The notes below the pieces were generated by a model, which ran no database searches, was not told the origin of the DNA, and saw only the letters and a list, made by a program, of their open reading frames with translations. Below are positions 791 to 60,321 of a DNA stretch of 62,687 bases, piece after piece. Each line of letters begins with the position of its first letter. Position 1 is the first letter of the stretch. The DNA lies in the NCBI RefSeq assembly GCF_003918875.1, contig NW_025765147.1:186001-248687 (forward strand), read 5' to 3'. The stretch is from Haliotis rubra. Lineage: Eukaryota. Both the position numbers and the translations under genes were made by a program.

Positions 791-813
791 GCTAATACCT
801 ATATTTCTAGTAC

Positions 814-2458
814 CGTATATTTCCACCTCGCAGAAACTCAGATTCAGCATCCCTACTGTAGGTTGGCGATATATCAGAAGATGGAACCCCGTTAGGAGTA
901 CATCACACTCCAGGGTGTACTCTGGTTCCCACATGTAGGAAGAGTCCGGGGCGTGACATATTCTTCCATCTACCTTCACATATACGTCATCTTGTTGATC
1001 TGGAATATGTTGAGAAGAATGAACCATAATACCTTACTCTAAATACATATTCGGGTGTGTTTTAGCGTTGCTGTAACGTTATAGATGTCAAAGCTGGTCA
1101 ATTAATGTTTAAGATGTCTCATATAAAGTACTTGTCTGATACAAAGACCTTGTCAGTATTAGTACTATTTGTCAGTATTAGTACGCATTCGTTATCTTGT
1201 GTTTATGGTCACACAGTACCTTCCCAGAATATCTTGATCCTGGTAACTGTCCTGTTCTCTGTAAACTCCGCCTCCCATGCTGGTAATATGGACGAGACTG
1301 ATGCACACGGCCCTGACGTCACACCATCAGTAACCCATGATGCCTGCCCGGTGGTGGTGTAAGCATTGTTTTGCCCAAATGTAAAGTTACTTGCTGTTAT
1401 ATTCACTGTAATAATAAACAGTATCATTATCTGAGGTAAAGTGCATCACATTCCAATTCAGGTAGGAATTACTTTACGTACTGTATGTACAATCCAGAAA
1501 GTGTTCTTTCACTTGTTGTGTCATCTCGAGTTGCTTAAAACTTTAATATATGTTGTACCTAGTTGTCAGATTGCTAATTGCTTCTCGTGCTATATTCACT
1601 TTAACAATAAACATAGTCATTATCTGTGGGTAACCCATTTCAATATGGGGATTCAGGTAGCGATTACTGGAAGTATTGTCTGCAGTATCTAGCATATGTT
1701 GTTTCACTTCAGCTTGTCATCACGAGATGCTTCAAACTTTAAAATATATATATCTTGCATCAGCTTTGAGCATTAGTCGACTGTTATGTCTTCGTCTCCT
1801 TTAGATTTGATGATATTGTATTCTGCATCACATTGTTTATGCTGTGTTGAAAGACATCCTGCAAATGCCAACAGCAAACTCTGCTACTTACACTCTTGTG
1901 GGTAACAGGTAGTAAATGCCTAGACATAATGTGCGAATATAAACCCTAAAATAATAGCGACGCGATTCGAGTGAACATAAAGTCTTCTTGTGAATCATTC
2001 AAAAAACATATCCTGTTGATCGTTATAGACAAAACATTAAATCAATAGATAACTGAAACCAGGTGTAAATTGTAATCATGATCTGTCCTACCTGTAGCAC
2101 CTGTAATCAATACATTGAAATCAACGTTACCTAAGGTACAGTCCTGGGGACAGTTGGCGTCTTGGCTGGACACTGAAACACACACAGGCTTATGATGTGA
2201 ATTTTAGCTGATAAAGCAGTCAATAAAATGGTCATTCTCAGAAACTCTTTGTTTTCTAGGCACACGCCTGTGAACGCAATGCAATTGTTACAGTGTATGT
2301 TTATTGCGAACTGTTTATTGTGGTTTATGTAAAATACATGTATATGACCCCATTTACTAAGAATGTAGGTATTTCTTTGGCAAGTGTGTGTGTGTCTCAC
2401 CTTGCGGGCTCCATACAAACATCACAATCAAGTAAATAATGGCGTTGTTGGTCACCAT
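814..2458 (-). CDS. Receptor paralog F, 5' part: signal peptide + Cys mini-exon + fucolectin/F5-8C-like domain; continues off the left edge
   Basis: Exons 2458-2401, 2172-2131, 1393-1220, 999-814, all GT-AG and phase 1, join in frame: MVTNNAIIYLIVMFVWSPQVSSQDANCPQDCTLASNFTF...[11 protein letters not shown]...LSFCEVEIY; exon sizes equal those of the PTP gene. Confidence 0.8.
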
Positions 2459-3109
2459 GGCTACACACTTGCTGATTGTGACATGAAATCAATTCATCCT
2501 TGGAGACCAAACAAGTAAATCCATTGAGAAGAAGCTGGTTCAGAAATGAATCTATAACCACACCAGTGACAGTTATTCTATCCTGCTTTGGGCTACACAA
2601 ACCTGCTGCTCACTTCCTCGCAGCCTTTTGCGTAATGGCTCAACACATTGCTGGCAGATATTCATATATGCATTGATATATTCACGGAAATATATTCGAA
2701 TCCCACATACGGAACAAATACAGAGAGTCTGGTGTGCACAGTCATCGAACATTGCGTCCAATGTCCTAGGGTACACAATGAGAAATGTTCAGTAGAAAAG
2801 GCCACAGAGTAGATTCGCTGACCTGGTTGTCATAGTGTCCCAATTGCGTAGATCGATGCTCATGATATCAATGACTGGATTCGCAAGTCCAGGCTGACGG
2901 AACGACAAATTTGCAGCAACGAAACAAAATGTCCAAAGTCAAATGTCTCAATAGTACGTGAGTGAGTTTAGTTTTACGCCGCATTCAGCAATATTTCAGC
3001 TATATGACAACTCTGAATAGAAAGGGTACTTTGGGGGATTTGTTACTATCATGTTCTCCTTCTGTTGATAAATATGTCTGCATGAAACATTAAGTAGACA
3101 CTGCTTGTA

Positions 3110-3470
3110 GATCGCAATAGTGCAGTGGTAGGATGTCTGCCTTTCACGCTGAAGGCCTGGGTTCGATCTTCGGTGGAGGCACCTTGGTTCGAGTCCCGAG
3201 GTGGGCACATTTGCGTAGTATCCTTGAACAAGATACTTAGTTCCACAGTGTCTCAGTTCACCCAGCTGTAAAATGGGTATCCGTGAGGATGTGCTGGCAA
3301 TGTGAGTGCTTAGTTCATTGCGCCTAACAGGCAGCATGGCTGTATGATCCCCAGGGAGTTGGCAAAATATCGGAAAGTACAATAGTGTCCTATGACCAGG
3401 GATATAGAGAATACTACACGAGGTCTCAGTTCATACGAATTATATGAAACGAGTGTCCTTCCTATGGTAT
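3110..3470 (+). mobile_element. tRNA-derived SINE, family 3 (Deu/CORE-like body)
   Basis: tRNA-like head (TAGTGCAGTGG...CTTTCAC...GGTTCGA) followed by TCCTTGAACAAG...CACCCAGCTGTAAAATGGGTA. Confidence 0.6.
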
Positions 3471-5295
3471 CTGACCGACGTCTTACATGCATTAAATTGA
3501 CAACATAGCGTAATTTAGTTATGTTTTGGTTTCAAACCGAAACCGGTTTCATAAAGAGGTTGCGGAAGAGTTTTGTACTGTAGTGCAATATGTGCATGAC
3601 GTCAGAGTGCAATGACGTCACTGCCTTGGTAACCGACGTCACGATGCATGTCATTTGCCATCGCCTTGTACAGCCTCCTACAGTAAACTACTCAGTACCA
3701 CCTCGTTTCTTGGTTTCCAGTTGCTTTATTCGGCTAACATCACTGGTGGAAACATTGCATTTATGGTTTTCGACGGATATAATGTCTCAGTTCTACTCAC
3801 AATTAAACAGCGACACGGCAACGTTCGCAATGTTTACATTCCCACAATGCATTTAAGTTGTACAATGAATGAATTCACATGTTTGTTATGAATGAAAAAA
3901 TAGTTACGTCAGAATGTGACCTAATTGAGAGGTCATCGGTTATCCAATCAAATCGTTAGAATTTCAGGTCAAGTCGTTACGACACAGGTCAACGCGATAC
4001 GACACTCGTGTGACGTACGAGATTAGTATGCAACTACCATTCGGGGTTGAGTAGCTATGACACAAAGATCAAGTGAAGTGTAACAGTTGCAACAACATGG
4101 AAAAAACTGTCACATTGTTAGAGTAGCCTGTGCTAGTGGTGGTGCTATTCGTGAAATCCTGATGCCTATACTGATTCTCTGTGATTTAATCATATTTGTT
4201 ACTCCTACTTTGCTGTTTACACCCAGTGGAATATGTTTCGTTTGATATCCAGGATTGGTTATTTTTTTAACATTGACGTCTCATATTTAGACTCGAACTG
4301 CCCACGCACATGAGTACCGATTTGTGACCTGCAAACAACGCCTTGGTGTAACATGTCTGTTAGTGTCCTCATGGTCCCTAGAATCATTACTAGTCTTAGA
4401 TTGAAATCTGTGATAAACTAATTATTTTACTATTTATGTGTATTATGAAGTAATAACTTGTTTTTAGTCACGATTTGGCCTGTGTGACTTAAAAAATTAA
4501 CTCACTCACTCACCCAGTATCCTCCTGTGATATTTATAGAGCAGCTACCAGGGTGTAATCAGTTGTTACATGATCTGCTGTGACAGTTGAGTCATTTATG
4601 GGAGATAAAAAATTGTAGCTTATCCTTAGTTTGATCATCGATTTTCTGGGCGTACTAGCCATGGAAGCAAAGAATATATGTTTTATGAGAATGTCACAAC
4701 TAGTGTTGCATAAAGAGCCAAAGAACTGGAGTTTATCAATGTCGCCAATCATGGTTCACAATCCAATGTTTGCAATATTGGTTTCAGGCGGAGATCTCTA
4801 ATCTAGTTCCTGGACAGTTCGGGCAAAGTAACGCTGTGTGTTTTGTAGCATTAAAAGCTCAAATAAGCGACGAGACAGTCTTCGACATGGTGTCCTACAT
4901 CAGGCCAGTCTTCCAGTCACATTGTAATGGCTGTTGTAGCGGAATATGGAAACGTGTTCTAGTCAAGGCTCACTAGATCTGACCCCTACTGACTATGAGG
5001 TGTTTGTAAATTTGAATATTCAACCCTTACGTTATTACAATGACTTGGTTGTTGTCACAGATGACTGGTTGATGAGCATTCGAAAGACAAAAACATCCCA
5101 CTTCCAAAAACATACATCAACGAATTATGTTATGTGTTCGAAAACGTGGTCACTATGACATTTCATATTTGGCCATCCTCCGTAACCCCCATATGGGCAA
5201 AGTACAAGAATAGGATGGTCTTCATGGAAGACACTGCAACAGTAGTAGCTCACTATGCGATTTATGTTTCACCTGAATGACAGCAGGGAGCAATC

Positions 5296-7180
5296 TTATG
5301 TGCGGATATTTAGGGCATTTTCGTACAGACTCAAATCAGTAGTATTAACATACATGTTTGATTCTCCCGCTGCTTCACCGATGTCTTGATTATTAGAACC
5401 AACGTTGACATAGCATGATGTTCCAGTTGACACATTCTGATCATTAAAGTATTCGTTGTTCACATAGGTGTATTCGTTTTCATTAATGTTCTCATAGCTG
5501 GTAGAAACTGTCGTGTTAACATAAGTGGATGTCTGATTTGACCATCCCCTTGGTGTTCTGTGACTTTGTATGATCTGGGCCCTGTTCCTCAAAGCGATCG
5601 TAGCGCTAAGATGATCGTAACTCCCATACTTTAACATAGACTTACGACATTCGTAGCGCTACGATCGCTTTGAGGAACGGGGCCCTGGTATTGAGTGTGA
5701 TCAGAGGGTTCAGCTACACACAGTTCATAAGATGGCGTAACTGCTTCTCTAGCGTCCTTGGCTTGGGACCTTTTTCCTTTCTGTCTCCTGAAACATCGAA
5801 TTATGAATATGATCTTACAATGGTGCTCCCAAACAATATTAAAAGATCCGGTTCCGTTGAAAGGACCACACCGATGCTGATAGAAGAGAGGTACTCATGT
5901 CATTAATATTCTACATCTTGACAGAGGTGTTATTTAAATGTGTCGACGAAATGTTGCCTCTGCCCAAATGTGCAGTGGAAAAAAGTATAGTTTCGCCATG
6001 AATTATTCCAGTAAAAGCATGAGGACCGTTGTGTTCGGATGTTTTGACATTATCGTTGCCATTAACAGTTCCGGTGAAACGACCAAACCAAATTCCTCTG
6101 ATGGAACAGAGGTATTCATGTCATAAATATTCCACATCTTGACATAGGTGTTATTTATATGTGTCGACGAAGTCTCTGAGAAATGTTCCCCTGCCCAAAT
6201 ATGCAGCGAAATAAAGTATAGTACCATGAAGTATTCCAGTAAAAGCATCAGGTCCTTTTTGTCAGGATGTTTTGACATTATTGTTGTCAATAACAAAGGG
6301 GAGGAAATTTGAGATCAACCTATTACTGTTGTAAATTCGGGAACTTTAATCTTCCAGCGAAGCATTTTATGTATGCTATATTATCTTAACATACACATTT
6401 GTATCAGAAACATACTTCTTTTAGAGCTGTTGATAGCTGCACCATACCTCACACACACAACAGCAACAACCGCAACAGTGACGACACCAGCAACCACAGC
6501 ACCCGTGACAATGACGTATAGTAACGGGAACCTGCTATCGGGGGACTCTGAAAGTGTAGGATACATTCAAGCGAGGAAATAAAACACATTACACATTAAT
6601 ACATTGAACAGGTAATTTTTGTATGTGAAATAGACACTTTTATGCCGCATTAATATCCTTTTCAACAATGACATGCTTCTTTTGGATGAACATATTTCTT
6701 CTTATGTGAGTGCATGCGAGTATAATATATATATATTACATACGTGCCGGGTTTGCACGTGAGATAATACCCACAATACAATACAAACACAAAAGGTCAG
6801 CAATATAAATCGGCCTTGATCATCTGCAGTGATTAACAAGAGTGAAAGACTCGAAGTGACATAGTGCCAGTTATCATAGTGTTGGCCAAGTATACAATAT
6901 AAATGTATATTTAATTCATGGCATAAATATTCATCTCAAACTCCTGCTTTTGAAATGTCACGTGCAAAGATAAACTTTCTCTAATCCTGCTTGTTTCAAT
7001 AAATACAATATCATTGGGAGATTTAAAATGTTTATTAATTGCGCAATTACAATTGACAGTAACTACAACCTGCAAGAATTTCGCACTCTTTCATTGTCTT
7101 TAACTCGTCCGTTTTTGAAGAACCCCCAAAACCTATACATCACTTCCTTTACCTGCTGCACCAGATGGAGGCGTGGATGG
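5296..7180 (-). pseudogene. Receptor paralog E (YxN-tail type): mucin remnant, TM exon 6547-6448, tail exon 5787-5296
   Basis: TM exon intact (LLYVIVTGAVVAGVVTVAVVAVVCV); tail exon interrupted by a MITE with an in-frame stop; ectodomain exons absent (junction ~7185). Confidence 0.8.
5578..5684. mobile_element. PIF/Harbinger-like MITE
   Basis: ~31-bp TIRs (GGCCCYGTTCCTCAAAGCGATCGTAGCGCTA), CTG target-site duplication (5575-5577/5685-5687), empty site in paralogs at ~49210 and ~58750. Confidence 0.85.
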
Positions 7181-11500: not shown

Positions 11501-14500
11501 TAGTCTAGATAATAAATAAATTATGACGGAATCAAGTCGTAATCAAAATTTAATTCTTTTCATTAGAGGTTTTGCTTTCAAATACAATAATGTAATTCAT
11601 CAAAACACTTGTAAACTGTAAACCTTTTCAATTTAACTACGTGACCTAAATATCGCCTGAACGTCAGTCGGCCATCACTGTCGGGATAGTCGTGTTGAAA
11701 ATTGTTCACAAACAAGCAGATAAAAGTTACGCATTAGGAGCGACACACACAACTGAAGAAGCCAAATGTAAATAACAGGGAACTGTATGTCTCAAATAGT
11801 TGTGGTTAGTGTCGTTGTCATTGCTTACACGCTATTCTTCATCGGAGGACGAGTCACTGTAGATAATACGGCGACGCTTGGCGGAGGACATTGGCTCGTC
11901 TCGGCCTGGAATTCCCACTTGTCGAGATTCGATGTTTATGTTGAATACTCCACCGTAAATTGGGCCTGAAAACACACTGCCTACAACCTCGAATGAAGAG
12001 GATTTCAAGCCGATTGTGTTCTGACTGTGAGAAGTGTTATCAACCTCTAGATGAGAAACCACGGGAGGCATGGCAGTGGCAGTAGAACACACGTTTTGTG
12101 CGAGAGGACAAGTGGACGCGGCTGACAGTGGCAGTGATCGAGATACCAAGGTGCCGCTCATCTTTTGATGTTGTGTATTCGAAACTTTGGCATATGAATT
12201 CACAGAAGCAACATTTTTATGGCCTGAAAGCTGCATTATGTGTGTAGGTGCAAAGTTATGTTCACTGAGAGTTTGCAACATGGTTTTTTCTCGCACTGTG
12301 ATTAGTCAAGCGTTTGTCACTTGACAAGTGTGCGTGTTGTGCCATGGATTTCATGATGTTTCCAAGTTTATTTTTCCCCACTGGCTGTCGCTTAAACCAA
12401 GATTCGCCATCACGAGGGACACCCTTTGTGTGTGAAGCTAAGTAGAATGGATGATCATTTGAAGAGAAATTCTGAGGACGGAGGCTACGATACTTCTTGT
12501 ACAGTGCTACCGGACATCTGGCAGGGTCACTCGGTACAGCCCATACTCTCGGGGGGGAATCCGTCTTGTGTCGTTCGGATTAGCACCGGTGCGGGTCTTG
12601 GTTTGTCGCTCGCAGTACTCAAGATACTCCTGACCCTCACTGTCAACTCGAAGTGAGACATCTCCCCAGAGCATATTTCTGTGTGGACGGACAGATCTTA
12701 AGCCAAAAAACATGGTATTATTCCACCACAATGTGTTAAGAATAGCATCGGGACACCCCTCTCCGAGTTGACCCACTTCCCAAAGTTTGTTTATTTCGGA
12801 TTGTGACACGGCCTCGGCGGCTTTAGGTAAGTTCCCCTTCCCTTCCGCCTTCACGTGCTTTAATTTACACGTAAACACCTCCCTAGATCGAGCAAATTCG
12901 GGGTCAAGTAGAATTGATTTTTGATATTTCAATCTCTTCAAATGGCGGTCCAAACTTGATCGAAATCCGCGGAGTGACGATGGCTCATACTCGTCCCCGT
13001 TTGCTTTTTTGGCATCCATGAAAAATTTGCAAAGTAATTGATTCAGTTCGAGTGGGGGGGATTTTTTCAAGAGATTTGTGTTCCTGCAGAACATTTTGGA
13101 AATAAAATGAGACCGTTTTCAAGTCATATTTTGTTTTCTTTGCCGTGTTTTCATTTTCATTTTTGGTCAGAAAGTCGATCAATTTCTTTATTCCATACTT
13201 CATCATTTGTGTCGAAATTAGCATCTAGGCCAAGATCTACATCATTCTCATCTTCTCTAAAGAGTTCATTAATCAGTTCTTGTGACAGATCAGAATAATC
13301 GCCAATCGGCAAATTTGGGGGAGGGACCAACGAAACAGTCTCGGGCAACACTTTCAGTCTGTATCTAGGTACTTGCTTTTCTCCCTGTGCTGTCCTGACA
13401 ACATACACGTTGAATGTATTCAATGGCCTGATAATATTCACAACTCTTCCAACCAGTTGTCCGTCAATTTTGACCAAGTCATTAACTTTTACGGGCGACG
13501 CCATATTTGTTTACACTCCCGATAGTCCTAGCAGACGTATTTGTTTACTTATTTAGATTGTTTTATTTTCGTTTTTATGAACAGAAATTTTGGTTATTAA
13601 AGGACTGAACACCTGTACTTGTAACTACACTAAATAAATTTTTTTATTTAATTTCATAGAAGTGTTCTCGTTTTACATGCTTTCAGAATGTGTGAAAACT
13701 TCTGAATGAAAAACATGAATGGAATGAGTGATGAAAGTAGTACCGGTAATGTCAAAGTTCACGTATTAGCCAATCAAATCAATCGAAGGTGTTATGACAC
13801 ATATGTGTCAGAACACTTTGTTATGAAACCCCTTTACGAAGTACCACGTGGGTAATAATAGACGTTAACGGCCGCTCATGCTTAGCACATGGCAGACAGT
13901 CCGTCAACGTCAATAATTCGAGTTATCTCCCCTTTTCGAGTCCTCGAGTCCTTGAAAATGGACTCGAGTCCAGCTACACCCGACTCGTCCTCGAGTACTC
14001 GAGTACCCGTGGAAGCCCTAATTCTGAGCTTGACTCTGATGAAGATGACGTGGTTACTAAACTGCTATATTCTGAAAGGGATACTTGGCCACGCTTTCTT
14101 GTTCTGGAAGCAAAGGGTGACCGAACACTTGCTTCCTATTCACCATTTTTGTTAGAAAAGGGATTACAAGGTAAAGCAGGTGAGTTGAAAAACGTTACCA
14201 AATTACGGTCTGGAGGTCTTTTAGTTGAATGTGTCAGGAAATCGCAGGCAATTAACCTCATGACGTCAGCCAAATTAGCTGACATTCCAATTACATGTTC
14301 AGCACACAAGACCCTTAACTTTTCCAAAGGTCTCATCCGTGACAGAGACCGAAGTCTCGCAGATGAATCTGTTGAAGACATTGTATCTCAGCTTAGAAGT
14401 CAAGGTGTCCTTGAGGCCAAACAATTTACATATCGTAAAGATGATCGTGTATTCCCGTCCAACACATATCTTTTGACTTTTGACACCCCGGTTCTGCCAA

Positions 14501-26195: not shown

Positions 26196-27345
26196 CTGTA
26201 TGTATCATATGAGCATTATGAGTAGATTGTCACGAATCCGTGACATATCTATCTGTGACTTACAATCAAATTCCACGGAACAGACAATATGTAAAGAAAA
26301 CCTGATGTTTAATTCACTGCTCATAAGGATAATGGGTACTCCTGGTTCAATACAGACGCATGAACTGGCCAACTGATTTACACTTCCAGCAACGATGTTC
26401 GTAATTACATGATTTCATGAATCGCGCCAGTGCACCAAAATGAGACATGCACGTATTGCATACATAGGATCAATAGTAATAAACTCAGAGGTCATGATGA
26501 ACTTTATGAACTGTTCACTAACACACTTTCCGAAATGACTTTCCGGGCGACAAAGATATACTCGTTGTTCCCAAACTTAGTCTCCTCCTAAGTACCAAAG
26601 TTATATCTTGGCGTAAGCTTATCTTTACGGCCTGTCACTACGACCGATGTAAGATGTAAGGAGGTTCACGGGTTTTCAAGTTTTCTGGCCATGTTAAAAA
26701 ACTCTGGGGCTTTACATTTTAAAATAAATTAACAAAATGAACAACATTGAGATACATACAAGAAAGAGGACGATATCACAAACATTTTGCTGTCTTTCTC
26801 GACACATTCTGTAGGTAACCTTTAAGCATAGTATTATGCTATTTGTGGTTATAGTTATAATTAGTTAATTAGTTATATTGTTAAGGATTTCAGCATTTCC
26901 AAGTAATGATTTGGGGTGTTGATTGGGAAAAAAACACAAGATTCACATACAGTCGAACACTGTTGTGTATTTTCTAGGTACGCCACAGCGGCAAATGACT
27001 AAATACCAGCTTTTGCTTCGAGACAATGGTACGTTCGTCACATCAAAATTCAGAGACAATGGTGTTTGACTGCAACATACCCTTTACGTAGTAGACACAA
27101 AGAGGTGATTAGGACGGACAACGTGTTGTTTGCAGAGACAGATTTGGCCATTTGTCCTCTACTTGCCTTTGTTTTCCATGACGTCAGCAGTCCTCGAAGT
27201 GTCACAGCCGCGTTGTGTATCTGCCATCACAAAGGTTGCGTTAACGCATTCAGCAATAGCGTTACGGTCAATATGTATCAGACATAAACAGTAGTTCTTT
27301 AATATCTTTTACAAGAGATCAGGTAAGATGCAGCTCAATGTTTGA

Positions 27346-45367: not shown

Positions 45368-45955
45368 GATTCCACACTTGCTGATTGAGACATGAAATTA
45401 ATTCATCCCTTGAGGCCACACAAGTACATCCATTAAGAAGCAACTAGTTCAGAAATGAAACTACAACCACACCCGTGACAGTTATTCAAGCATGCAATGA
45501 GGTACTCCAACCAGCTCACTTCCTCACAGCCTTTTGCGCATTTGGCTCGACACATTGCCGGTAGATATTCATATATGCGTTGATATATTCACGGAAATAT
45601 ATTCACAGAGATAGGACACATTCAATAAAACGAGCATGGTGTGAACAGTCATCGAAAACTGCGTCCCATGTCCTAGAGTACACAATGAGAAATGTTCAGT
45701 GAAAAGGCCTGCTTCAATGTTCTTACTAAGAGGACATGTAGTGGATTAAAGGATCATATGCAGTGTATTGGAAAACGCCAGTGCGTCAAGATTGTGATCA
45801 TTTTCCTCCTGATAAGCAATATGTGACCAGACTGTTCTCATCACGTGTACCTGTGATAAAATATCAGAGTTATCACTGTAAAATTGCACAAACTAAAAAC
45901 GCCATATATGCAGGTTACAATGGTTGCAAAGCTGCATCCACTTCCTCCTTATCAA

Positions 45956-46108
45956 GGGGGTAGCCTAGTGGTCAAAGCGTTTGCCCGTCACGCCGAGACC
46001 CTGGTTCGATTCACCACGTGGGTACAATGTGTGAAGCCCATTTCTGGTGTTCCTCACCCTGATATTGCTGAAATATTACTAAGAGCGGCGTAAAATTAAA
46101 CTCACTCA
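45956..46108 (+). mobile_element. SINE family 1
   Basis: A/B boxes and ACTC tail. Confidence 0.8.
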
Positions 46109-48930
46109 TTCCCAGGCCTCCTTATCAATACTGCTGTTCATCGGCTTGCATGGATAATATATTGTTGTGTGATGAACACATATATCTCCAGACTCTGGGA
46201 ATGATATTAATACATGCTGCAACACAAAGTAAACTCGCTGGCGTGGTTGTCATAGTGTCCCAATTGCATAAATCGATGATCATGATGTCAATGAGGGGAT
46301 TCTCAAGTCCAGACCTACAGAACGATAAATTTACAGTAACGAATTCGAAACAAAATGTCCAAAGTCAAATGTCTGAATAGAAAAGGTAATTTGAGGGATT
46401 TGTTACACCCGGGTTCTTCTTCGGTTGGCAAATATATCTGTATGAAACACATTCCCACTTCATTTAGAAGACATGACATTGCACTGATGAAGATGTTGCT
46501 GTTTACACATCGTGTGTGCTACAAAGTGAACGGTAAGCAAGGTGATGGGTAGGCTGTGACATGTCATGCAAATACAACATGTGGCTATTCCAGGAACACA
46601 AAAATACACGCAGCATCTCAATGAGAGTGCTTACACCTGAGGTGATCCCTGTTTGATGGTGATTCATAAGCACATGATTCTGATGTAGTCAGACTATTCA
46701 TTAAAGAATGGAGGTTGTCGCCTTATACAAATATTTGTAAAAGGATTATGATACGATTGGTATCTGAATAATCGTGCTTCGTGTCGACAGGAAAACGTGT
46801 GTAGGTTTTCTGTGTGATAACTTTCCTCGTGATAAGCAATATGTGTCACGGTATGATCTGCTATGAGGTATCACTACTTTTTTTATCTCCCATAAATGAT
46901 TCAACTGCTACAGCAGCTACTATAACTACTGATAACCTCCCAGTGGCTGCTCAATACTATCAGGATAGGACACTGACTAACATGGTACAGCAGGGCGTTG
47001 TTTGCAGGTCACAAATCAGTATTCACCTCCTCACGATGAACGTACAGGATGATGAGAGTGAGACGTCAATGCCTCACAATAAACAGTCGCGATTATCAAA
47101 CAAAACATATTCCACTGGGTGTAAACAGGAAAGTAAAGGTAACAAATTTGGGTAAATCACAGAGAATCAGTATAGGCATCAGGATTTCACGAATAGTGCA
47201 AATGTCCCCTGCACCACCACTAGCACAGGCTACTCTAACAATGTGACAGGTTTTTCCGTGTTGTTGCAACTGTTACACTTCACTTGACTTTTGTGTCAGA
47301 GCTACCCAACCCAGATATGATAACGATGTAGCCTGGACTACCTTTTACTTGGCAATGTCAGAGAGCGTGAGCTTCAGAGCTATACACTCCCGGCTAATTT
47401 CGAAATGTGTTGTTGCTGGTGCGTGTGTGTGTGTCATGTGTGCACTGTTTCGAGGCCGTTTTAGAGGTATTTATACATGTACAAAATATCCACAATGTAT
47501 ATTAGGAGGTATTTTACCTATTCCAACTATGGTTTCAGATACATCTTCAGGCGTCATTGCTTAAAATTTCTGACTGTTGATAAGGTCGACATTGAAAGAC
47601 TTCGCCTGGGTGAAATATTGTTTTGTGACGACCGCATTCATTTGTAGTCCTTTGAAAAGGTGTGATACATATATACATGCATAATGCACACCTTTTTAAA
47701 ACGATTTTGCTGTATTTAAAGTATCTGAATGGTCTTGCCAAAGAGTTACGGTCACAGGTTTGTTACTGGTATCAAACAAACACTTATGACAATATGTATA
47801 GGAAAACAGTCACCATTGATGATCAAAGGATAAACAGCTGTGTATCTGAAGTGTGTAAAAGTCACCAAATGCAGGTATGAGGCCACGGTTTGCGGGGTCA
47901 AAAAGTAGAATTTGTTTGGCTGAAGGGCTACAAGGGACGGTAAACGAAACCGTTTAATTATTTGTGTATTTTGGGGGGAATATTCCAACTATGAAAAGCG
48001 TAAGGCTAAATTTTGAAATGAGTAAATAATCACACAGATCAGTGGAGGTTACACAAGTTATACTGGGCCAAAAGGAATTAGGTTTACAATCACGAAAGGG
48101 AATACCATAGTAAAATCCGCAGAAGATGAGACTCTTTATATTTATTCATTTAACAACTTTTAGAAGCCGGTATGATGAACAGGTACTTTTTATGGACAAG
48201 TTTTTTATTGCAATGGAGGCATCGTTTCGATGTAGATGCTAACACCGTTATCAAGCAAGTGATATACAACATTATGGACAAGGCGAATATATACATGGAC
48301 GATATTGGAGCTATACAATTATTCTATTCATGAAACGCTGAATACACATGCAACATATCTTTTTGAAGAATGTCAGTTACATTTCGTTAATTGGTGCCGT
48401 GTAGAAACGCAACCATTCAAAGCTTTTGAAGCTTTATACAGTATTATACATATATTAAGCAGAATTAACGTGAACATTGTGACAGTTATGGGCAGTGTTA
48501 ATGACTTTCAAAGGTAAAAAAAGCGGTGCGGCAGTCTGCAACATGGTGTCCTTCATGAGGCTAGCCTTGCAGCCTCGTTGCAATGGCTGTTGTACCGGAA
48601 TATGGAAATTAGCCTCTATGTCCAGGTTCACCTACTGACTATCAGGTGTTTTGAATACCGAGCCCTTACGTTAATATAATGACTTGGTGGTTGTCACAGA
48701 GTGCTGGTAGATGAACTAGCACTTGAAAGACAAAGCCATTCCACTTATGAAAACATATGTCAATCAGTTTATGTGTTCGAAAACGTGGTCACACAGTTTT
48801 TATTTGGCCATCCACCCTAACCCGCGCATATATGATGAAAGTAATTGAATATAATGGTCTATATGGAAAATATTACAACATTAATAACTTCATGCAAGTT
48901 AGGTTTCACCTGAATGACAGCAGGCATCAA

Positions 48931-51900
48931 TCAAGTGCAGATATTTAAGGTATTTTCGTACAGACTAAAGTGATTAGTACTAACATACATGTTTGATTCT
49001 CCCACTGCTTCCCCGATGTCTTGATTAATAGAACCAACGTTGACATAACATGACGTGCCAGTTGACACATTCTGATCATTAACGTATTCGTTATTGACAT
49101 ATGTGTATTCGTTTTCCCTTGTGTTCTCACAACTGGTAGAAGCTGTCGTGTTAACATAATGGATCCTTGATCTGACCATCCCCTTGGTGTTCCGTGGCTT
49201 TGTATGCTCTGGTACTGAGTATGATCGAAGGGTTCCGCTACACACAGTTCATAAGATGGCATGACTGCTTCTTCAGCGTCCCTGGCTTGGGGCCTTTGTC
49301 CTTTCTGCCTCCTGAAACATCGAATTATGAATAATGATATTACAATGGTGCTTCCTAACAATATTCAAAATTTAGAAAAAGTGATAATTGAACTGGGTCA
49401 AGAGAGTGATATAGCGAGAGTGAATCGGATTGTGAAAGTAACTGACATTGTAAAGTTAGTATATCAAGCTAGATAGCATAAATCAAGCTTGACTGTAAAA
49501 ACAATTCAAGTAAAACATGAAATTATGTTTTTTGTCAAAAGAGTTGTTGTCAGGGACAAGTGCTGTAACCAATCCATGTATGCATGCTTCGCACGAACGG
49601 AACATTAATAACATTCTCTGCTCCCCTATTTAATGGAGATAGTCCGACCTGCCGTTTGTGTCATTTGACATCCTTGGTAATGCATATGTAGAGTAGCTCA
49701 GGTCAAGCTGAACAAGCTGTACTCATGTCATTAATATTCTACATATTGACAGAGGTGTTATTTACATTCGTAGACGAAATGTTCCCACTGCACAAATGTG
49801 CAGTGGAATCCAGTACAGTTTCACCATGAATTATTCCAGTAAAAGCATGAGGACCTAAGTGTTTTGACATTATCGTTGACATTAACAGTTCCGGTGAAAC
49901 AACCAAACCAAATTCCTCTGATAGAAGAGAGGTACCTACGTCATTATTATTATACATCTTGACAGAGGTGTTATTTATATGTGTCGACGGAGTCTCAGAG
50001 AAATGATCCCTCTGCCCAAATGTGCAGTGTAATAATGCAGTAGTTTTGCCATGAATTATTCCAGTAAAAGCAAGAGGACCTTTGTGTCAGGATGTTTTGA
50101 CATTATTGTTGTCAATAACAAAGGAATTTGAGATCAGCCTATTGTTACGGTATATTCGTCCTCGTTAATCTTCCAGCGAAGCTTTAAATTGTGCTCTATC
50201 ATCATAACCTATAGAACATTTGTTTCACGCACATAATACTTTACCATCTCTTGATAGCTGTACCATACCTCATATACACAGCAGCAACAACCGCAACAGC
50301 GACGACACCAGCAACCACAACACCCACGACAATGACGTACAGTAGCGGGAACCTGCTATCGGGGGGACCCTGAAAATGTAGCGATGCATTCAAGCGAGGA
50401 AATCAAACACATTACACATTATCAGTTTGAACAGTTAATTTTTTTATGTGAAATGCACATTTATAAGCGGTATTGATATCCTTTTCAACAATGCCTTGCG
50501 TCTTTTGCATGAAAATATTTTTTCAGGCAAAACACAAAAGACGTTTTCACCGGTCACCATGCAATGTATGTGATTGATTACGGCGCCTTCAGAATTGAAA
50601 GAGGTATTTTACGCCTGGTGAGAAATATCTCTGACTACATACACTAAAAAGACTTCCCCTTTGCACTAACTCTCATAATCCTTACATATGACCTGCTTGA
50701 TTCTTAATCATATAACCTCATAGTAAATGTAATGAGTAATGATGAGGGGTATTTTCTTCTTATATGTGTGCATGCGAGTGTATTATATACATATATTACA
50801 TGCGTACCCACAATGCATTACAAACACAAAAGGTCAGCGACATAAATCGATCTTGATTATCAGCAATGAAAGACTCGAGGTTATCACTGTGTTGGCCGAG
50901 TATACAATTCAACTGTCTATCATTCATGGCATTAATATACACTTCAAAATTCTGCTGTTGAAATGTCACGTGCAACGATAACCTATATCCAAGTCTGTTT
51001 GTTTGAATAAATGCAATATCAATGTGAGAGTTAAACTGTTTATTAATTGCGCTTACCTCCGAGGTAAGCACGACGTTAAACCCAATTTCACCTCACCTCA
51101 CCCCCGAGGTGACAATAACTACAACCTGCAAGAAGTTTGCACTCTGTCATTGTCTTTAACCCGTTCGTCTTTGACGGACCCTCAAAACATATATATCACT
51201 TCCTTTACCTGCACCGGATGGAAGCGTGGATGTTTCCGATGGGTGTGCTGCCGCAGTCCGTGGTGTGACCATTGTGTTTGATGTTTCTGCCGTAGGTGAT
51301 ACAACCGCCGATGTCATCGGTGTTGGAATGGATGTTAAGGACGTTGTACTCTTATCCATGCTGACCCAGAACTCTGTAATTATTGTCGAGGATGCTATTG
51401 GTGAAGTAGTCACTTTTCTCGTAAACAATGTCGTGGATGTTGTTGGCATAGTAGTAGTTGTGGAAGAAGACACCGAAGAAGACGTTACCACCGAATCAGC
51501 TAAAGAAACACATACATGTCTTTCTTAATTTCAATGTAGCTTGAATGGAAGGTATATGATACAATGTATCTGATTTGGTAGCGGACTGATTTGGCATTTG
51601 ACAATTCAACATATGTCATATTTTGGATTATACTTTCTTAGTAAAGTACAGATTCTAGTACTGGTGGTCTGGACCACGGACGTTGTGGAAGCCTTGGTGC
51701 CTAAGCAGGCTAGGCGTCTGACTTTGTGTGCTGCTGATTAGGTGCCTGACGCTGAGTCTGTGGGTTCGAATCCCATGTGTGATGATAAGCATGCGGGTAA
51801 CACTAAATTCGTAAGTTGAAAATAAAATATATTGTACAATCAAGTGATATACGTAAAATATACCAGATTTTAGAGAATATTTTACTTTATTCGTGATCTG

Positions 51901-54900
51901 GCAACAAAAGAAAATATCATTTCAAAAATAAAATTCATTGATTTGAATTGACATCTTAGCACAAATTATTTTAATCATCATCATGATAAAAAGATTCATA
52001 ACACATAGTACACATCCAGTCTTCACTGTAGTTTCATTAAGAATGAACTGCGTCTGCCTACACTTATTCTGCCAGTAGACAAATCATCATATATTTATGT
52101 TATATGTTGTATTTATTATCTCAGCAGATATTTATACCTTTATATTATTGTTGACACGTTCGTGGTTACGTATGCCAGGATGTTTGGTGACTATATCATC
52201 GACAGTGGAGACGGTTAAGTCTCTACAACATCCCGAGGATGCAGCATTTCTCTAAAGTGTATCCATCGATACATATCTTCCACCTCGTGAAGTCGGAATG
52301 AAATTTTACTCTAACTGCTGGTTTGCCATAATGAAAGTGATGAATTAGAAAGTATGGCCAGCATATTATGTACCCAAATTGAGTTGGTGCTTACTCATAT
52401 CAATTAATCTCAATCAATCGTTGTCAAAACAAACGAAGTGAGTTCAAATTCATTGATTTTAATTGTGTAAGTGTGTAAGGGGTAAGTTCATGTCACCTAA
52501 TTCGTTAGGTAGTTCAGAAATGTGTATAACCCAGAGACTTAATCGCTTAAAACAACATGCACAGTCAGTCCCCCAACATCAAAGGATTTTCACTGTAATT
52601 ACAAATGTATACCAGGTAAGACATCACTGAATACACCTACATTCTGTCGTGTAAACACAGCGACCTTCCTTCAAGGATTAACGACAATATTTCATTTTTT
52701 AGAAGAATTGTGGACACCATGTAAAAAATTGTCAGGTGTGTTATCTTTGGTGTCCAATGAAACAAGGTCACGTGACATGGAACAGGCTTTTGGCAGCTGC
52801 AGATCAATGGTATATTGTTCAGTTATGTGGATACTGATGGATACATTTCTCAAACAAGGTACATGTAATAGCCCAATAGTTTGCTATAACGTTAGTTGGT
52901 TTGATATCTGTATTTTGTCTTTTTGTAACTGAAACCCAATGCAAAGTTTCGTAAATCAGGATAACTGAAACCTAATGAAGCCTTACCGGTTTCTCAGTAA
53001 TTTATCAATTTAAATTATCTGTAATTAAGTTTACCAAACGAAACGTAAAGGAGACAAAGTAGAATCTTAAGTTTCCATATTCTTTCAATTAGGTTTAAGT
53101 TTTCCTGAAATTAATTTTATGTGACCATATCTTTTATTTGAATTCTGGTGTACAGAAACATTGAAATCACTAAACTGAAACCTATATACATGTAGTATAT
53201 GGGCAGTTTAACAGGTTTCTGGATATATGCTGTATATACTGGTATATATGGAGTCAAATTAATTTCCTCTACGTTCGTTTCATTCAAGTTCTCATCAATG
53301 ATGGTTTCCAGTTGCGTTACGCAATGGAAATTACCAATGATACTTTCTGGAAACTAACTTTGTTGGTATCCGGCAGTTTCCCAGTCGCTGAAGCTAACCT
53401 TGTTGGTTTCCGGCAGGTTCAGGTCGCTGAAACTAACCTTGTTAGCCGGAAACCAACAATCATAGTTTCCGTGAGCGGAAACCTACGTGATTCTGACATT
53501 ACCAAGTTTCATGTAGGTTTCCGGAAAAATGGAACCTTGTACCTTGTTATTTTTGCTGTGATAGGACTCAACCCAACAAAAGTACTAGAATCTGTACTTT
53601 ACTAAGACAGTGAAATCTCAAATACAATATACGTTACATTTGACGACTTTCTAATCTCATTTTGTATTCATAGTCGGCAATTTACACATGAAAGTTCAAG
53701 TGTTCCTTTGTTCTTTTCCAGGTTTCTTCTCAAGGTTGCACTGTGGATGAAAATAAGGAAATAAATAACGGAACATTTGTACTTTCATGTGTTCCCTTAT
53801 TTGTTTCCATGAGTATATTTAACCAGACCGTAAGCATTGCGCTGATTCAGTTATACGTTTTGTGAAGATATACAACCGCTCAAACAGTCCATGAATGATC
53901 TCATATATCTTCAGTAATGTTCAACGGTCAATTTGTGAAACGTCCCGTCAGAGCCAGCGTCCTGGTGGTGTTAGTGAACTTCCCTCGAATCACTGTCGGT
54001 ACAGTAGATGTATTTGCTATCTGAATTTAAATATCTAATAACAAACTAGTTTTCCATATTAGATTTTAGTTGGTGCCGTTTTCGCCATAAGATATGTAGC
54101 CGTTTTTGCCAAGTCGAGGTTCCATTATGTCTAAATGGTGCCAAACAAATAATCCCAATGATTGGGCAAAATTATGTATCATTATTGACTGAATACATAT
54201 ATCTTCTACCGTATACTTCCACCTCGCAGAAACCCAGATTTAGCATTCTCGCATCTTCTGTAGGTTGTCGATGTATCAGGAGATGGTCCCCCCGTCACGG
54301 GTACATCACACTCCAGGGTGTACTGTGGTCCCCATCTGTAGGAAGAGTTTTGCGGGGTGTGACAGATTCTATCACCTACAGACACATATACGTCATCCTG
54401 TTGATCTGGAATATGTTTTGAGAAGAAAAAACAAAATACCTCACACTGAATTACTGGTAACATAAAAGATTTCAAAGCTGGTCAAATAATATTTAAGATG
54501 TCTCATATAAAGTACTTGCCTCATATAAAGTACTTGCCTCATATAAAGATACTCATATATCAGTATTAATACTATTTGTCAGTATTAGTACGCATTCGTT
54601 ATTTTGTGTTTCTGATGATACAGAACTTTTGCAGAATATCTTGATCCTGCTAACTGTCCTGTTCTGTGTAAACTCCGCCTCCCATGCTGGGAATATGGGC
54701 GAGACTGATGCACACTGCCCTCACGTCACACCATCAGTAACCCAGGATGCCAGCCCCCGTGATAGTGTAAGTACTGTTTACTCGCTGCTATATTAACTGT
54801 AATAATAAACAGTATCATTATCTGTTGTACGTTAAGTTCATCACATTCCAATATGGGGATTCGAGTTACTGTCTGTAGAATCCAGAGAATGTTCTTTCTC

Positions 54901-55605
54901 TTTGATTTGTCATCAAAGTTGTTTAAATCTTTAAAATATGTTGCGTCACCTTTCAGCATCTGTCCATTAGATCGAAGAAGTATTGTATTGTTTCCAACAT
55001 CATCTTCGTTACAGTGTGTTGCCCCTTTTGTTGAAAGACATCTTGTTAAATACCAAATACTAACTCTCCTACTTACACTCTTGTGGTTAACAAGTAGTTA
55101 ACAAGTAGTAAATGTCTATACAAAAAACATAATTTGGAACTATAAACCCTAGTATATTGGCAACGAGATAAGTTTTCGAGTGGTTTAGCGACAAAACATA
55201 TTCCGTTGGCCGTGAAAAGCAAGTGAGAAAGTTCTTATAACAATTAATGAAAACTTCGATATCAACGTTACCTAAGGTACAGTCCCGGGGGCAGTTGGAG
55301 ACTTGACCGGACACTGTAACGTACAGAGGATTTGGGTCAATATGAATATCTGATGATTAAATGGTTAATATAATGGTCATTCTCAGAAACATTTGCTTTC
55401 AAAGCATTCCTCTGTGAATCCAATGCAATTGTCACTGCGCATGTTTATTCTAAACTGTTTGTGTATGCTCATGTTTCAGGTTCTAGGAATGTAGGTATTT
55501 CATCATTGGCACCAGATTTATGTGTGTAGCAGATGTATACAGCTCACCTTGCAGGCTCCAGACAAGCGTCAGAATCAGGTAAGCAATGGCGTTCTGGGTA
55601 ACCAT
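48931..55605 (-). pseudogene. Receptor paralog B: lectin-like ectodomain + mucin + TM + YxN tail, several frameshifts
   Basis: Exons 55605-55548, 55313-55272, 54784-54627, 54405-54210, 51499-51209, 50369-50269, ~49312-48931; indels in exon 3, exon 4, the TM exon (G6) and the tail (~49158). Confidence 0.75.
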
Positions 55606-58474
55606 GGTTCCACATTGGTTGAGTATGACATGAAATGAATTCATCCTTAGAGACCATACCATTAAGTTCATTGAGAGGAGACGAGATCAGAAATGACACT
55701 ACAACCTCACCAGTGAAGCTCACTCTTTCTGTTGGTAAATATATGTGCGTGAAACATAGTCACACATCATTCAGAAGATAAATTTGGCTATATACTGTTC
55801 ATATACTGTACACATTATGTGTACTACAAAAGGTACATTAAGCCAGGTCGTGTGTATGCTATGATATGGTGTATAAATACAATAATTGCCTATTTCAGAA
55901 AAATGAATATTAAATCCGCCGAGGTGTGACTCCTGCTTGATGGTGATTCTTAAACAGATGATTGTGATGTAGTCGGTGTATTATAGAATGGAGTATGTTG
56001 CTTTTATACAATTATTTGTAAACTGACTGAGATACGATTGATATCTGAATAATCGTCCTTTGTGTCTACAGGAAAATGCGTTCGGGTCTACTGTGTGATA
56101 ACATTCCTCGTGATAAGTAATGTACTCCTCAAAACAAAGTCGGGGAACTTCAGTTTTAATTAACGATTGAACATATTGGGAGATATATCGGATTCAATCA
56201 ATGTTGATATGATGATTATGAATGTTTGGGGAGTGCATTACCGCTTCCACTTCCTTATGACCAATGTTTGTACAGTAATCGCTCTTGAAAAAATGATTGG
56301 TGTATGACGTGAAATTTGCATGTGTACAATTTTCATCTTCAAACAAAACATACAGGCTGGATGAAACACTAACAAATTTGTAATGCAAGATGATTGTCAA
56401 AATTAATGCAGAGATTTATTGACCTTCTTGAAAACCGTCAAAATCAAGTATGCCACCCAATGGACGTGTATGGGGCTACTGCGTTGTGCATGTCACGTGC
56501 ATCCCATGCGTTGTGTTGAGAGGTGGTGATAAGGAAAATTGTGGTGCTTTCATAAGATGTATGTCTTTGTAAGTTTATACTTCCAATCCAAATTGATACT
56601 TCAGGTTCCCCTACTTTTTAAAAAAATATATGGGAAGAGTATATAAAGAGATGTTGTCACTAACGGTATGATCTGCAAAGAGGTGTCACTACATTTTGGG
56701 GCATCTCCCATAACTGCCTCAACTGCCACACCAGTTACTATAACAACTGATAACATCCCAGAGAATACTTAATAAATGTTAGAGTAGGACACTGACACGC
56801 ATGGTACAGCGGGCGTTGTTTGCAGGTCACAAATCAGAACGCATTCCTTCACAATGCAGTAGTACGTGGGCAGATGGATGATGAACGTGAGACGTCAATG
56901 CCTGACAATAACCAGTCTCGGGTATCAAACGGAATATATTCCACTTGGTGTAAACAGCAAAGTAGAGTAAATCACTGAGCATCAGTATAGGCATCATGAT
57001 TTCACGAATAGCCCGAATGCCTCCTGACGCACGTCAGCACAAGCTACAATGTGACAGGTTTTTCCGTGTTGTCGCAACTGTTACACTTCACTTGACCTTT
57101 GTGTCATAGCTACCAAACCCTTATATGATAACCATATAGCCTGGACTACCTGTTACTTGGCAATGATCTGAAAGCGTGAATGGCAGTCAAGTGCGTCGAT
57201 ATCAGTGCTAGAACTTTAGAGATATCGCAAACTGTCGCACTGTCGAAAACTGTCGGCACGCGGTGTTGTCGGTGTTTGCCGCAATCACATGTTGCTTAAT
57301 AGGATAATCGTAACGAGCGTTCCAAGGGACATAGCTTTATGAGGTTCGCTTGAAAAAACGGTCGGTCGGTAGAGGGCGCGAGAGTCGATCTAATGCAATG
57401 TTGCATTAATTCATTCGAACTTTTTAATTTCAAATTGTAATACCTAATATTTTTTCGGAATAAAGTATATAGTAGTTTCGCTCGGGGCTGATAGTTACAA
57501 TTATTAATGAGAGAAATGCATTATTGATTTTTAGAGAAGTGTGACGTGATAGTGTGCTTTTAAGGGCTAAAAAGTTAAGTACCAAAACCTTTTAAGTATT
57601 TGTTTTATGCTACATTTTGAAATGAGTAAATAATGACATAACATCAGTGGATGTTCACAAGTTATTTTGGGACATACAGAATTAGGTTTACACTCAAGAA
57701 AGATAATACCATAAACCAGTATCATGTACTCTCTAAAATGAAATACGAATCAGACGAGACCCTGGATTTTACATGTTCATTAAACATCTTTTAGAAGCCG
57801 AACAGGAACAATTATTTTATGGATAACATCTTTATTGCAGTTGGTGCGACGTTTCGATGTAGATGGTTTCTAGCACCGTTATCAAGCCAGTGATAAACAA
57901 CACTATGGACAAGGAAAATAGAATATGAAGGATATTGGAGTTGAACAATGATTTTATTCGTAAAACGATCATTACACATGCAATATGTCTTATTGAACGC
58001 TCTCATGTTACATTTTCGTTAAATGGTACCGTGTACAAACGCACCAGTTTTAACATTTTATTAAGCTTTATAAGTATTATATGAGTGCATGAACATGTGA
58101 TGGAAAGGAGTTCTAAAACAGAATTAGCGGGACGTTGTCACACTTATGTGCGGTGTTGTGGGAACGAACCTCTTCGTACAGGTTCACCAGATCTTGCCCC
58201 TACTGACTCTCAGGTGTTTTCAAATTTGAATATTGAATCATTAAGTTATTATTGGTGGTTGTCACAGAGGGCTGGTTGATGAACCAGCTTTCGAAAAACA
58301 TATGTCAATGAATTATTTTAAGTGTTCGAAAATGTGATCACTTCTAATTTTTCCATCCATAACCCTCGCCCTTATGGGCAAAGTACTAGAATATGATGGT
58401 CTTCACGGACGATACTGCAACGTTAATAGCTCCATGCGAGTTATGTTTCACCTGAACGACAGTAGGCACCAATC

Positions 58475-60321
58475 TTAAGTGAGGATATTTGGGGTATTTT
58501 TGTACAGACTAAAATCATTAGTATTAACATACATGTTTGATTCTCCCGCTTCACCGCTGTCTTGATTATTAGAACCAACGTTGACATAGCATGATGTTCC
58601 TGTTGACACATTCTGATCATTAACGTATTCGTTGTTGACATAGGTGCATTCGTTTTCATAAATGTTCGCAAGACTGGTAGTTGTTGTCGTGTTAACATAA
58701 ATGGATCCTTGATCTGACCATCCTCTAGGTGTTCTGTGGCTTTGTATGTTCTGGTACCGAGTATGATCGATGGGTTCCGCTATGCACTCTTCATAAGATG
58801 GCACAGCTGCTTCTTCAGCGTTCTTGTCTTGGGGCCTTTTCCCTTTCCGTCTCCTGAAACATCGAATAATGAATATGACTTTATAATGGTGCTTCCAAAC
58901 AATATTTGAAAATCCGGTTCAGGTGAAACGACCAAACAAACCAAATTCCTCTGATAGAACAGAGGTACTTATGTCATTGTTTCCTCTGCCCAAATGTGCA
59001 GTGAAAGTATAGTTATTTCCAGTTAAGGAGGACTTTTGCGTCAGGATGTTTTGACGTTATCATTGTCAAGGGGAGCAAATTTGAACAGAATTTTGAGGTC
59101 AGCCTATCCCCGTTAATATTTCAGCGAAGCCTTTTAGTATGCTCTGTTATCATAACTTATACAACATTTATATCAAGAGCATAATAGTTTACGAACTGTT
59201 GATAATTGCACCATACCTCACACACACAATAGCAACAACTGCAACAGTGACGACACCAGCAACCACCACACCCACGACAATTACGTACAGTAACGGGAAC
59301 CTGTTATCAGGGGACTCTGGAAATGTAGACATACATTCAAGCGAGGAAATCGAACCCATTAGATATTAACACATAGAACATTTAAATGTTTATATGTGAA
59401 ACAGACATGTGCATACCGCATTGATATCCTTTTCAACAATGACATGCTTCTTTTAGCTAGAACACAAACAACTTTTGCACCCGTTACCATACAGCATTAT
59501 GTGATTGAATACTACTCCTGCAGAATCGAAAGAGGTATTTTACGCCTGTTGAGAAATATATCTGACTTTATATACTAAAATGACTTCCCCTTTGCAATAG
59601 CACCTTACATATAACTTGCTTGACTCTTAATCATATAACCTCAAAGTATATATAATTAGTAAATGGTGAAAAGTGTTTTCTTCTAATGTGTGTACCTGCG
59701 AGTATGATATACATATTATAATTACAGGCGTGATGTACTACCCACAATGTAATACAAACACAAAAAGTACCCGATATAAATCGGTCTTGATCATCTGCAG
59801 TGATTAATAATAGTGAAAGACTCGAAGGGACATATTATCATAGTTTTGGCCGAGTATACAATATAACTGTTTTGTTTTTTTCTTTAATGACATGTAAACA
59901 TGTACTTACAAATTCTGCTGTTGAAATGTCACGTGTAACAATAATCCTTCTCCAAGTCTGTTTCAATACAAGCAGTATCAATGTGAGATTTAAACTGGTT
60001 ATTGACTGCGCGTACCTCTGCTGTGACAAGAACTACAACCTGCAAGAATTTAACCCGTTCGTCGTTGAAGAACCCCCCAAACATATACATCACTTCCTTT
60101 ACCTTCACCAGATGGAGGCGTGGATGTTTCCGATTGGTTTGCTGTCGCTGTTGTTGGTGTTGCCATTGTGTTGGATGTTTGTGCAGTAGTGGACATAGTG
60201 ACCAAGAACGCTGTACCTATTGGTGAAGTAGTCACGTTTGTCGTAGACAATGTCTTGGATGTTGTTGGCATGGTAGTAGTTGTGGAAGAAGACATTGAAG
60301 AAGACGTTTCCAGCGGTACAG
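58475..60321 (-). CDS. Receptor paralog A, 3' part: mucin stalk, TM, YxN-rich tail; 5' exons off the right edge
   Basis: Exons 60321-60103, 59316-59217, 58853-58475 join in frame; tail has 9 Tyr, 8 of them YxN. Confidence 0.82.

Follow-up and report, generated by a model that had tools for sequence, protein, structure and literature searches.

Matched lectin-like ectodomains on a receptor tyrosine phosphatase and on predicted YxN-tailed receptors in an abalone gene cluster

Vertebrate immunity is credited with having invented both paired receptors and scaffolds of the LAT type. A gene cluster in the abalone Haliotis rubra raises the question of whether a mollusc holds something comparable: does one lectin-like ectodomain there precede either a tandem-domain protein tyrosine phosphatase (PTP) or a cytoplasmic tail rich in YxN motifs, and could the two kinds of receptor act together? 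The stretch of DNA that we analysed, hereafter the window, is 62,687 nucleotides (nt) long and forms the final 62.7 kb of H. rubra contig QXJH01001229.1 (GCA_003918875.1; 100% identity over 34.4 kb), with base 62687 as the end of the contig. Two stretches of the same contig outside the window are called L003 and L004, and P-numbers are working labels of NCBI protein models.

DNA alignments of the copies placed all of them on the minus strand and bore out the shared exon architecture that an earlier note on this DNA had described. A 58-nt signal exon, which encodes a hydrophobic N-terminus, and a 42-nt exon encoding a CxxxC motif (both found in copies B, C and E) are followed by two 186-nt phase-1 exons that jointly encode a lectin-like domain of ~125 amino acids (aa) with four invariant cysteines, and then by a Ser/Thr-rich mucin exon. 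Two kinds of 3' end follow. One has a 100-nt transmembrane (TM) exon and a 379-nt terminal tail exon; the other has a TM exon of its own and a series of phosphatase exons. Exon junctions are all AG/GT and phase-compatible, except for a GC donor at the end of the juxtamembrane exon of copy C (38339).

Self-comparison of the window revealed one duplicated unit on the minus strand, running from the mucin, TM and tail exons of one gene through a spacer of ~3 kb to the signal, CxxxC and lectin exons of the next; positions 642-7179 align with 43685-51232, and partial matches lie at 54192-60412. Along the minus strand, in its 5' to 3' direction, come copy A (60321-58475), copy B (55605-48931), copy C (45367-31048), two retrotransposons and other repeats at ~24-8 kb, fragment D (7179-5296) and copy E (2458-814). 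The window holds three lectin-exon pairs and three tail sets, fewer than the five or more tandem paralogues that had been proposed. On the contig as a whole there are three mega-units, 92-98% identical over tens of kilobases including introns. The receptor features of the window are listed below.

60103-60321, minus strand: copy A, mucin (Ser/Thr-rich) exon, phase 1-1, AG/GT
59217-59316, minus strand: copy A, 100-nt TM exon, intact
58475-58853, minus strand: copy A, single cytoplasmic tail exon with stop, 125 aa
55272-55605, minus strand: copy B, signal exon (55548-55605) and CxxxC exon (55272-55313), both open
54210-54796, minus strand: copy B, lectin-like exons, broken (exon 1, 54627-54796; exon 2, 54210-54405)
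48931-51499, minus strand: copy B, mucin exon (51209-51499, open), TM exon (50269-50369) and tail exon (48931-49311)
44957-45367, minus strand: copy C, signal exon (45310-45367) and CxxxC exon (44957-44998)
43857-44455, minus strand: copy C, two 186-nt lectin-like exons (44270-44455 and 43857-44042), intact; predicted F-type-lectin-like beta-sandwich
41363-41554, minus strand: copy C, mucin exon, of a sequence type unlike the A/B mucin exon
38339-39263, minus strand: copy C, TM exon (39191-39263), small exon (38915-38961) and juxtamembrane exon (38339-38565)
33702-37618, minus strand: copy C, PTP domain D1, 8 exons (one of them 35550-35678)
31048-33532, minus strand: copy C, linker and degenerate D2, 7 exons, stop at 31048
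5296-7179, minus strand: fragment D, last ~27 nt of the mucin exon (7153-7179), TM exon (6448-6547) and tail exon (5296-5787)
814-2458, minus strand: copy E, 5' half, signal exon (2401-2458), CxxxC exon (2131-2172) and lectin exons (1220-1405 and 814-999), all open

By its predicted reading frame, the phosphatase member C is the one complete gene in the window. Copies A and E are cut short, and B as well as fragment D counts as a pseudogene. We traced the exons of C with the paralogous NCBI protein P0015 (95% identical), which holds the mucin, TM, juxtamembrane and PTP segments in one model. The 23 exons join through phase-compatible splice sites into one open frame of ~865 aa and the PTP exons are all free of lesions. 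At the level of the reading frame, the claim that C continues into a full D1/D2 phosphatase stands. Read in the assembled frame, D1 carries the KNRY, WPD, HC(X)5R and Q-loop (QTxxQY) motifs; PF00102 matches the C exons (E = 1e-87 on P0015), and D2 was found as two matched stretches against tandem PTP structures. The signature of D2 is QCRDDPRK, without C(X)5R, and this domain is presumably inactive. The closest PTPs outside Haliotis are of the PTPalpha/epsilon type (R4), and the best solved relatives are the tandem domains of PTPRS, LAR, PTPalpha, PTPepsilon and CD45. Copy C reads as a complete tandem-domain, R4-like receptor PTP (RPTP) with a D1 that appears catalytically equipped.

Existing annotation does not present C as one gene. 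Its juxtamembrane exon ends at a GC donor (GCG|GCAAGT, 38339) that opens a GC-AG intron to the PTP exons, and C is annotated as separate genes because the NCBI model reads through this donor. Of the models over the locus (XP_046556808-810), XP_046556810.1 (P0013, 'uncharacterized protein') covers the ectodomain, and the phosphatase is given as XP_046556809.1 (P0020, 'RPTP epsilon-like') plus a 164-aa D2 piece. P0013 is in addition a chimera, in which the B signal exon, the frameshifted B lectin exon 2 and part of the B tail exon are threaded into C. The join between ectodomain and PTP is also modelled in P0015 and in the H. cracherodii orthologue P0023, whose 939 aa run from signal, lectin, mucin and TM through D2 in a single NCBI model. 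Elsewhere on the contig, a second RPTP copy has a frameshift/stop in the D1 exon encoding HKCHMYW (L003:19262-19390), so phosphatase copies are not all intact. Downstream of C lies a 47-nt satellite of ~30 copies with an 82% match (27344-28731), which is also found downstream of the paralogous genes on L003 and L004.

Copy B is the sole copy in the window that joins lectin exons to a YxN tail, and the earlier claim that it links the two within one gene did not hold up: B is a pseudogene with a stop and four frameshifts. Judged against C, E and the paralogues on L004, B shows a 17-nt deletion with a 1-nt insertion and a TCA-to-TGA stop (54721-54723) in lectin exon 1, a +1 G frameshift near 54288-54293 in lectin exon 2, a +1 C near 50361-50366 in the TM exon that leads immediately to TAG, and a -1 T frameshift near 49159 in the tail exon. 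We considered whether these were assembly errors and rejected this: three of them lie at homopolymers, but the TGA and the 17-nt deletion do not. The TGA and the TM frameshift also recur in the L003 copy, which lies 72-100 kb away on the contig and is 94-98% identical; because of this recurrence they are not random assembly errors, and they are therefore older than that duplication.

The three remaining copies are partial. A, B and fragment D (called E in the earlier note) do use the distinct TM exon and a single Tyr-rich tail exon, as had been described. The three 3' exons of copy A are all intact, and NCBI annotates a 223-aa gene there starting at the ATG at 60295; in the DNA that separates the mucin exon of A from the end of the contig (62687) we found no lectin exons. 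The L004 paralogue of A has lectin exons 0.4-1.3 kb upstream of the mucin exon, and the homology of A to it ends at ~60570. Upstream of that point, the sequence at 60570-62687 is unrelated to the paralogous locus and carries short plus-strand open reading frames (ORFs) that look like reverse transcriptase (RT), with no Pfam match at E <= 0.01. Fragment D is truncated at its 5' end; most of its mucin exon is gone, there are no lectin exons upstream, and its tail exon is split by a miniature inverted-repeat transposable element (MITE) of 109 nt (5577-5685) with terminal inverted repeats of ~32 nt (GGGCCC.GTTCCTCAAAGCGATCGTAGCGCTA). An ORF at 41554-41781 has a peptide signature similar to that of this element, suggesting a second MITE copy just upstream of the C mucin exon. 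Of copy E, only the four 5' exons, all intact, fall within the window, its 3' half being off the window.

Intact genes of the second kind were found outside the window. On L004 (6335-11769; contig ~40.7-46.2 kb), a 386-aa gene of seven exons with canonical splice sites runs through signal, CxxxC, lectin-like, mucin, TM and YxN tail segments, and its 3' half is 93.5% identical to A at the DNA level. It has no NCBI annotation of its own; the first exon of the RefSeq RPTP isoform X1 model, placed 20 kb upstream, is made of 30 nt taken from the mucin exon of this gene. Lectin-YxN models do exist at NCBI for two other species, H. rufescens (XP_046340997.2, P0007, 379 aa) and H. cracherodii (XP_071083743.1, P0016, 384 aa). 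The H. rufescens gene is flanked by two RPTP genes, the downstream one of which has the same lectin exons. These genes argue that the lectin-mucin-TM-YxN architecture is real, despite the broken B in the window. The proposal that the same ectodomain is attached to either a PTP or a YxN tail is accordingly upheld by intact examples in Haliotis, while its link within the window rests on a pseudogene.

The high identity of the mega-units and the position of the window at a contig end raise a further explanation, namely that the multiplicity is mostly an assembly artefact of haplotigs placed in tandem and that the true locus has a single RPTP gene together with at most two tail genes. Within one mega-unit, however, the A-, B- and C-type units differ by 15-25% and their lesions differ, and the same gene types are adjacent in the chromosome-level H. 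rufescens assembly. We consider this explanation very improbable.

What, then, might the tail do? It is a low-complexity stretch of ~125 aa. In copy A, eight of nine tyrosines lie in YxN motifs (five YVN, plus YQN, YEN and YKN), and the membrane-proximal one is YEEC. At an asparagine content of 14%, the chance of finding Asn at +2 of eight in nine tyrosines is ~1e-6. The tails of P0007 and P0016 keep seven YxN motifs, and six of the A sites align with theirs. Phosphorylated YxN is the Grb2-SH2 consensus, and YVNV is a Shc- and LAT-type site; the membrane-proximal YEEC/YEGC seems to resemble the Src-SH2 motif YEEI. Between H. rubra and H. rufescens the ratio of non-synonymous to synonymous substitution rates (omega) of the tail is 0.61, indicating weak overall constraint, and drift with kept motifs would fit a disordered scaffold whose function depends on short motifs alone. 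A search with the tail returned only two Haliotis proteins, and there was no Pfam match. Two other views of the tail were rejected. Its many NxT/S sequons might suggest an extracellular location, but the N-terminal signal peptide, the order of the ectodomain and the Arg/Lys-rich stop-transfer after the TM segment speak against this. A reading as YxxPhi endocytic signals fits the YVNV and YENI sites only and leaves the invariant Asn unexplained.

Within a species, the two receptor types have closely matched ectodomains. On the same H. rubra contig, the lectin domains of the PTP type (C) and the YxN type (the L004 gene) share 84% aa identity, whereas YxN-type orthologues of the Californian species are only 66-68% identical to the H. 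rubra domains. The maximum-likelihood tree of the ectodomains splits by lineage, with H. rubra and H. asinina on one side and H. rufescens and H. cracherodii on the other (support 97/92). Grouping the ectodomains by tail type is rejected in approximately unbiased (AU) tests, at p = 1.2e-8 for the YxN type and p = 6e-6 for the PTP type; these groups were named after the identity matrix had been seen. Between the two types, the lectin domains of H. rubra show a synonymous divergence (dS) of 0.08-0.16 and those of H. rufescens one of 0.20, lower than the 0.31-0.35 of same-type genes compared across the two species. Because the tails are orthologous across species, the PTP is ancient and the ectodomains cluster by lineage, ectodomain exons must have been exchanged or homogenised after the lineages split. 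The ectodomain exons of both types thus evolve in concert within each lineage, by gene conversion or repeated exon exchange, which is a signature of paired receptors. The earlier description of matched ectodomains on two receptor types is strengthened by these comparisons.

To ask what the shared domain might be, we turned to its predicted fold. An AlphaFold2 model of the ectodomain, built on a 10-sequence alignment, is an all-beta sandwich of moderate confidence (pLDDT 64, pTM 0.65). Its best matches among solved folds are F-type lectins, 3cqo (Z 12.3, root-mean-square deviation 2.0 A over 111 residues) and 1k12 (Z 10.9, TMq 0.68), followed by pneumococcal fucose-binding modules and CBM32s. 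Lectin-like is a statement about fold, and the domain is probably an F-type-lectin-like (galactose-binding-domain-like) beta-sandwich. A PDB profile search with the ectodomain alignment returned no sequence relative. Searched with phmmer against 1.84 billion representatives, lectin exon 1 gave meaningful scores to Haliotis proteins only; bacterial matches to ELWxxDGT-repeat proteins (P0008-P0012) involved just a WVTDG motif and were dismissed as chance. Other family members carry the same domain with a long mucin region and a short tail (P0003, P0006, P0018, P0019) or with another Tyr tail (P0017). Together these sequences suggest a family of type-I membrane glycoproteins so far found in Haliotis only, and literature searches found no description of it.

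Such a restricted range also bears on function. Ectodomain omega is 0.5-0.9, which may mark a fast-evolving binding domain, and fast evolution is typical of abalone reproductive and recognition proteins. Both the speed of the ectodomain and the restriction of the family to Haliotis in the 1.8-billion-protein search would suit a non-immune role in surface recognition, such as gamete recognition or larval-settlement recognition of algal or conspecific glycans, with the YxN tail as a general Ras/MAPK input. The sequence, however, holds no pointer to gametes, and we regard this role as improbable.

Do the two receptor types form a functionally coupled module? We hold it evenly balanced whether the matched ectodomains, joined to an RPTP in one type and to a YxN tail in the other, work together in this way. 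If they do, a shared ligand, probably a glycan, would gather both types, a Src-family kinase would phosphorylate the YxN tail, and the tail would become a multivalent dock for the SH2 domains of Grb2/Drk. The RPTP with the same ectodomain could then strip the phosphate from the tail, as the earlier note had it, or could act in the manner of PTPalpha and CD45, removing the inhibitory phosphate of Src-family kinases and thereby licensing phosphorylation of the tail. Vertebrate phosphatases of the PTPalpha/epsilon (R4) kind activate Src kinases. Because the PTP subtype is PTPalpha/epsilon-like, licensing is at least as plausible as erasing, and the proposed eraser is only one of two plausible directions. 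It is a more tentative step, and a doubtful one, to see here a form of paired receptor not previously described, in which a gene-converted ectodomain would sit on either an RPTP or a LAT-like Grb2/Drk scaffold and ligand would co-cluster enzyme and scaffold.

Several observations weigh against a coupled module. No YxN-tailed gene within the window is demonstrably complete, and NCBI left the intact H. rubra YxN gene unannotated and split or chimerised others. Inspection of the ectodomain alignment did not find H-x24-R-x-D-x4-(R/K), the fucose-binding motif of F-type lectins; there is an invariant His at 79 and an invariant Arg at +29, with no R-x-D at +25/+27. In Pfam, the ectodomain reached only a sub-threshold match to PF22633 (NedA-like galactose-binding domain; best E = 0.0013, 19.7 bits vs a cut-off of 27.8), so the name lectin-like, as first given, holds for the modelled fold and not for the fucose motif or a threshold family match. 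Omega between paralogues is 0.6-1.2, and broken copies are numerous (B, D, the frameshifted PTP on L003 and the lectin relics on L004); both would suit a cluster under rapid birth and death, some of whose members may be drifting. The mega-units, at their 92-98% identity, could partly be assembly duplication.

The same broken copies and high omegas feed an alternative without functional pairing, which we consider possible if somewhat unlikely. Here the locus would be a birth-and-death array in which unequal crossing-over puts a common 5' cassette (signal, lectin, mucin) on whatever 3' exons follow, leaving RPTP and tail genes independent of one another or tail genes as decaying by-products. The duplicated unit, which spans the 3' half of one gene and the 5' half of the next, is of the kind that such an array would have, as are the short-tail and other-tail members with the same ectodomain. 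Against this, three species retain an open YxN tail gene in which the motif positions have been kept, the two types are still neighbours in both H. rubra and H. rufescens, and the frequency of Asn at Y+2 lies far above what composition would give.

The remaining features of the window lie between the receptor genes. On the plus strand at 14050-23184, the interval separating the 3' end of C from fragment D holds two adjoining retrotransposons of the long interspersed nuclear element (LINE) type. They are ~76% identical to each other and carry ORFs for APE endonuclease, RT and RNase H, which stay open for longer in the second copy. ORFs at 11835-13510 on the minus strand, which show DUF3504 and a QRICH1-like match below threshold, probably belong to a domesticated or decaying mobile-element gene and have no relation to the receptor family.

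If the two abalone receptors are coupled, the same paired logic would have arisen independently in a mollusc, with the phosphatase built into the receptor and not recruited through an immunoreceptor tyrosine-based inhibitory motif (ITIM). One ectodomain with two tails would be a compact system in which to study the gating of phosphotyrosine signalling at invertebrate cell surfaces. There is also a practical side, in that abalone annotations split or chimerise these genes; the GC donor, exons of pseudogenes and the lack of a model for the intact YxN gene are among the causes.

Each part of the family can be set beside a known system. Like F-type lectins (eel agglutinin 1K12 and striped bass FBP32 3CQO) and CBM32, the ectodomain is a predicted beta-sandwich, which superposes on them with Z scores of 10.9-12.3 over ~110 of 127 residues; unlike F-type lectins, it is shorter (~125 aa), shares only 19-21% identity with them, and lacks both the fucose motif and a threshold Pfam match to F5/8-type-C or F-lectin domains. 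Like the R4 phosphatases PTPalpha and PTPepsilon and like CD45, C combines, by its sequence, a short mucin-type ectodomain that is predicted to be heavily glycosylated with a single TM segment, a D1 that should be active and a further PTP domain, D2. Unlike PTPalpha and PTPepsilon, it adds an N-terminal F-lectin-like domain and CxxxC motif, its D2 is strongly eroded, and the C-terminal Grb2-binding Tyr of PTPalpha is absent.

The cluster resembles vertebrate paired receptors (KIR, Ly49, SIRP, PILR and CEACAM1/3) in its clustered genes, its near-identical ectodomains with different signalling ends, and the homogenisation of these ectodomains within a lineage. It differs in that the abalone counter-arm is an RPTP itself, where that of vertebrates is an ITIM tail recruiting SHP-1/2, and in that the other arm is a multi-YxN tail in place of a charged TM residue with an adaptor bearing an immunoreceptor tyrosine-based activation motif. 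The abalone ectodomain is also lectin-like with a mucin region, not Ig or C-type lectin, and the abalone receptors are known here from sequence, with opposite signalling only conjectured. In LAT and NTAL/LAB (LAT2), which are single-pass, phosphorylated YxN motifs of a disordered tail are docking sites for Grb2/Gads. The YxN-tailed receptors would likewise be single-pass, and their tail, predicted to be disordered, has many YxN motifs (7-8 here, YVNV among them); a Cys lies at the cytoplasmic end of their TM segment. They have no sequence homology to LAT or LAT2, and they carry a lectin-like and mucin ectodomain of ~250 aa where LAT has almost none. Because LAT has been reported absent even from ascidians, in work on Botryllus (PMC12582321), the LAT-like tail of abalone would be convergent.

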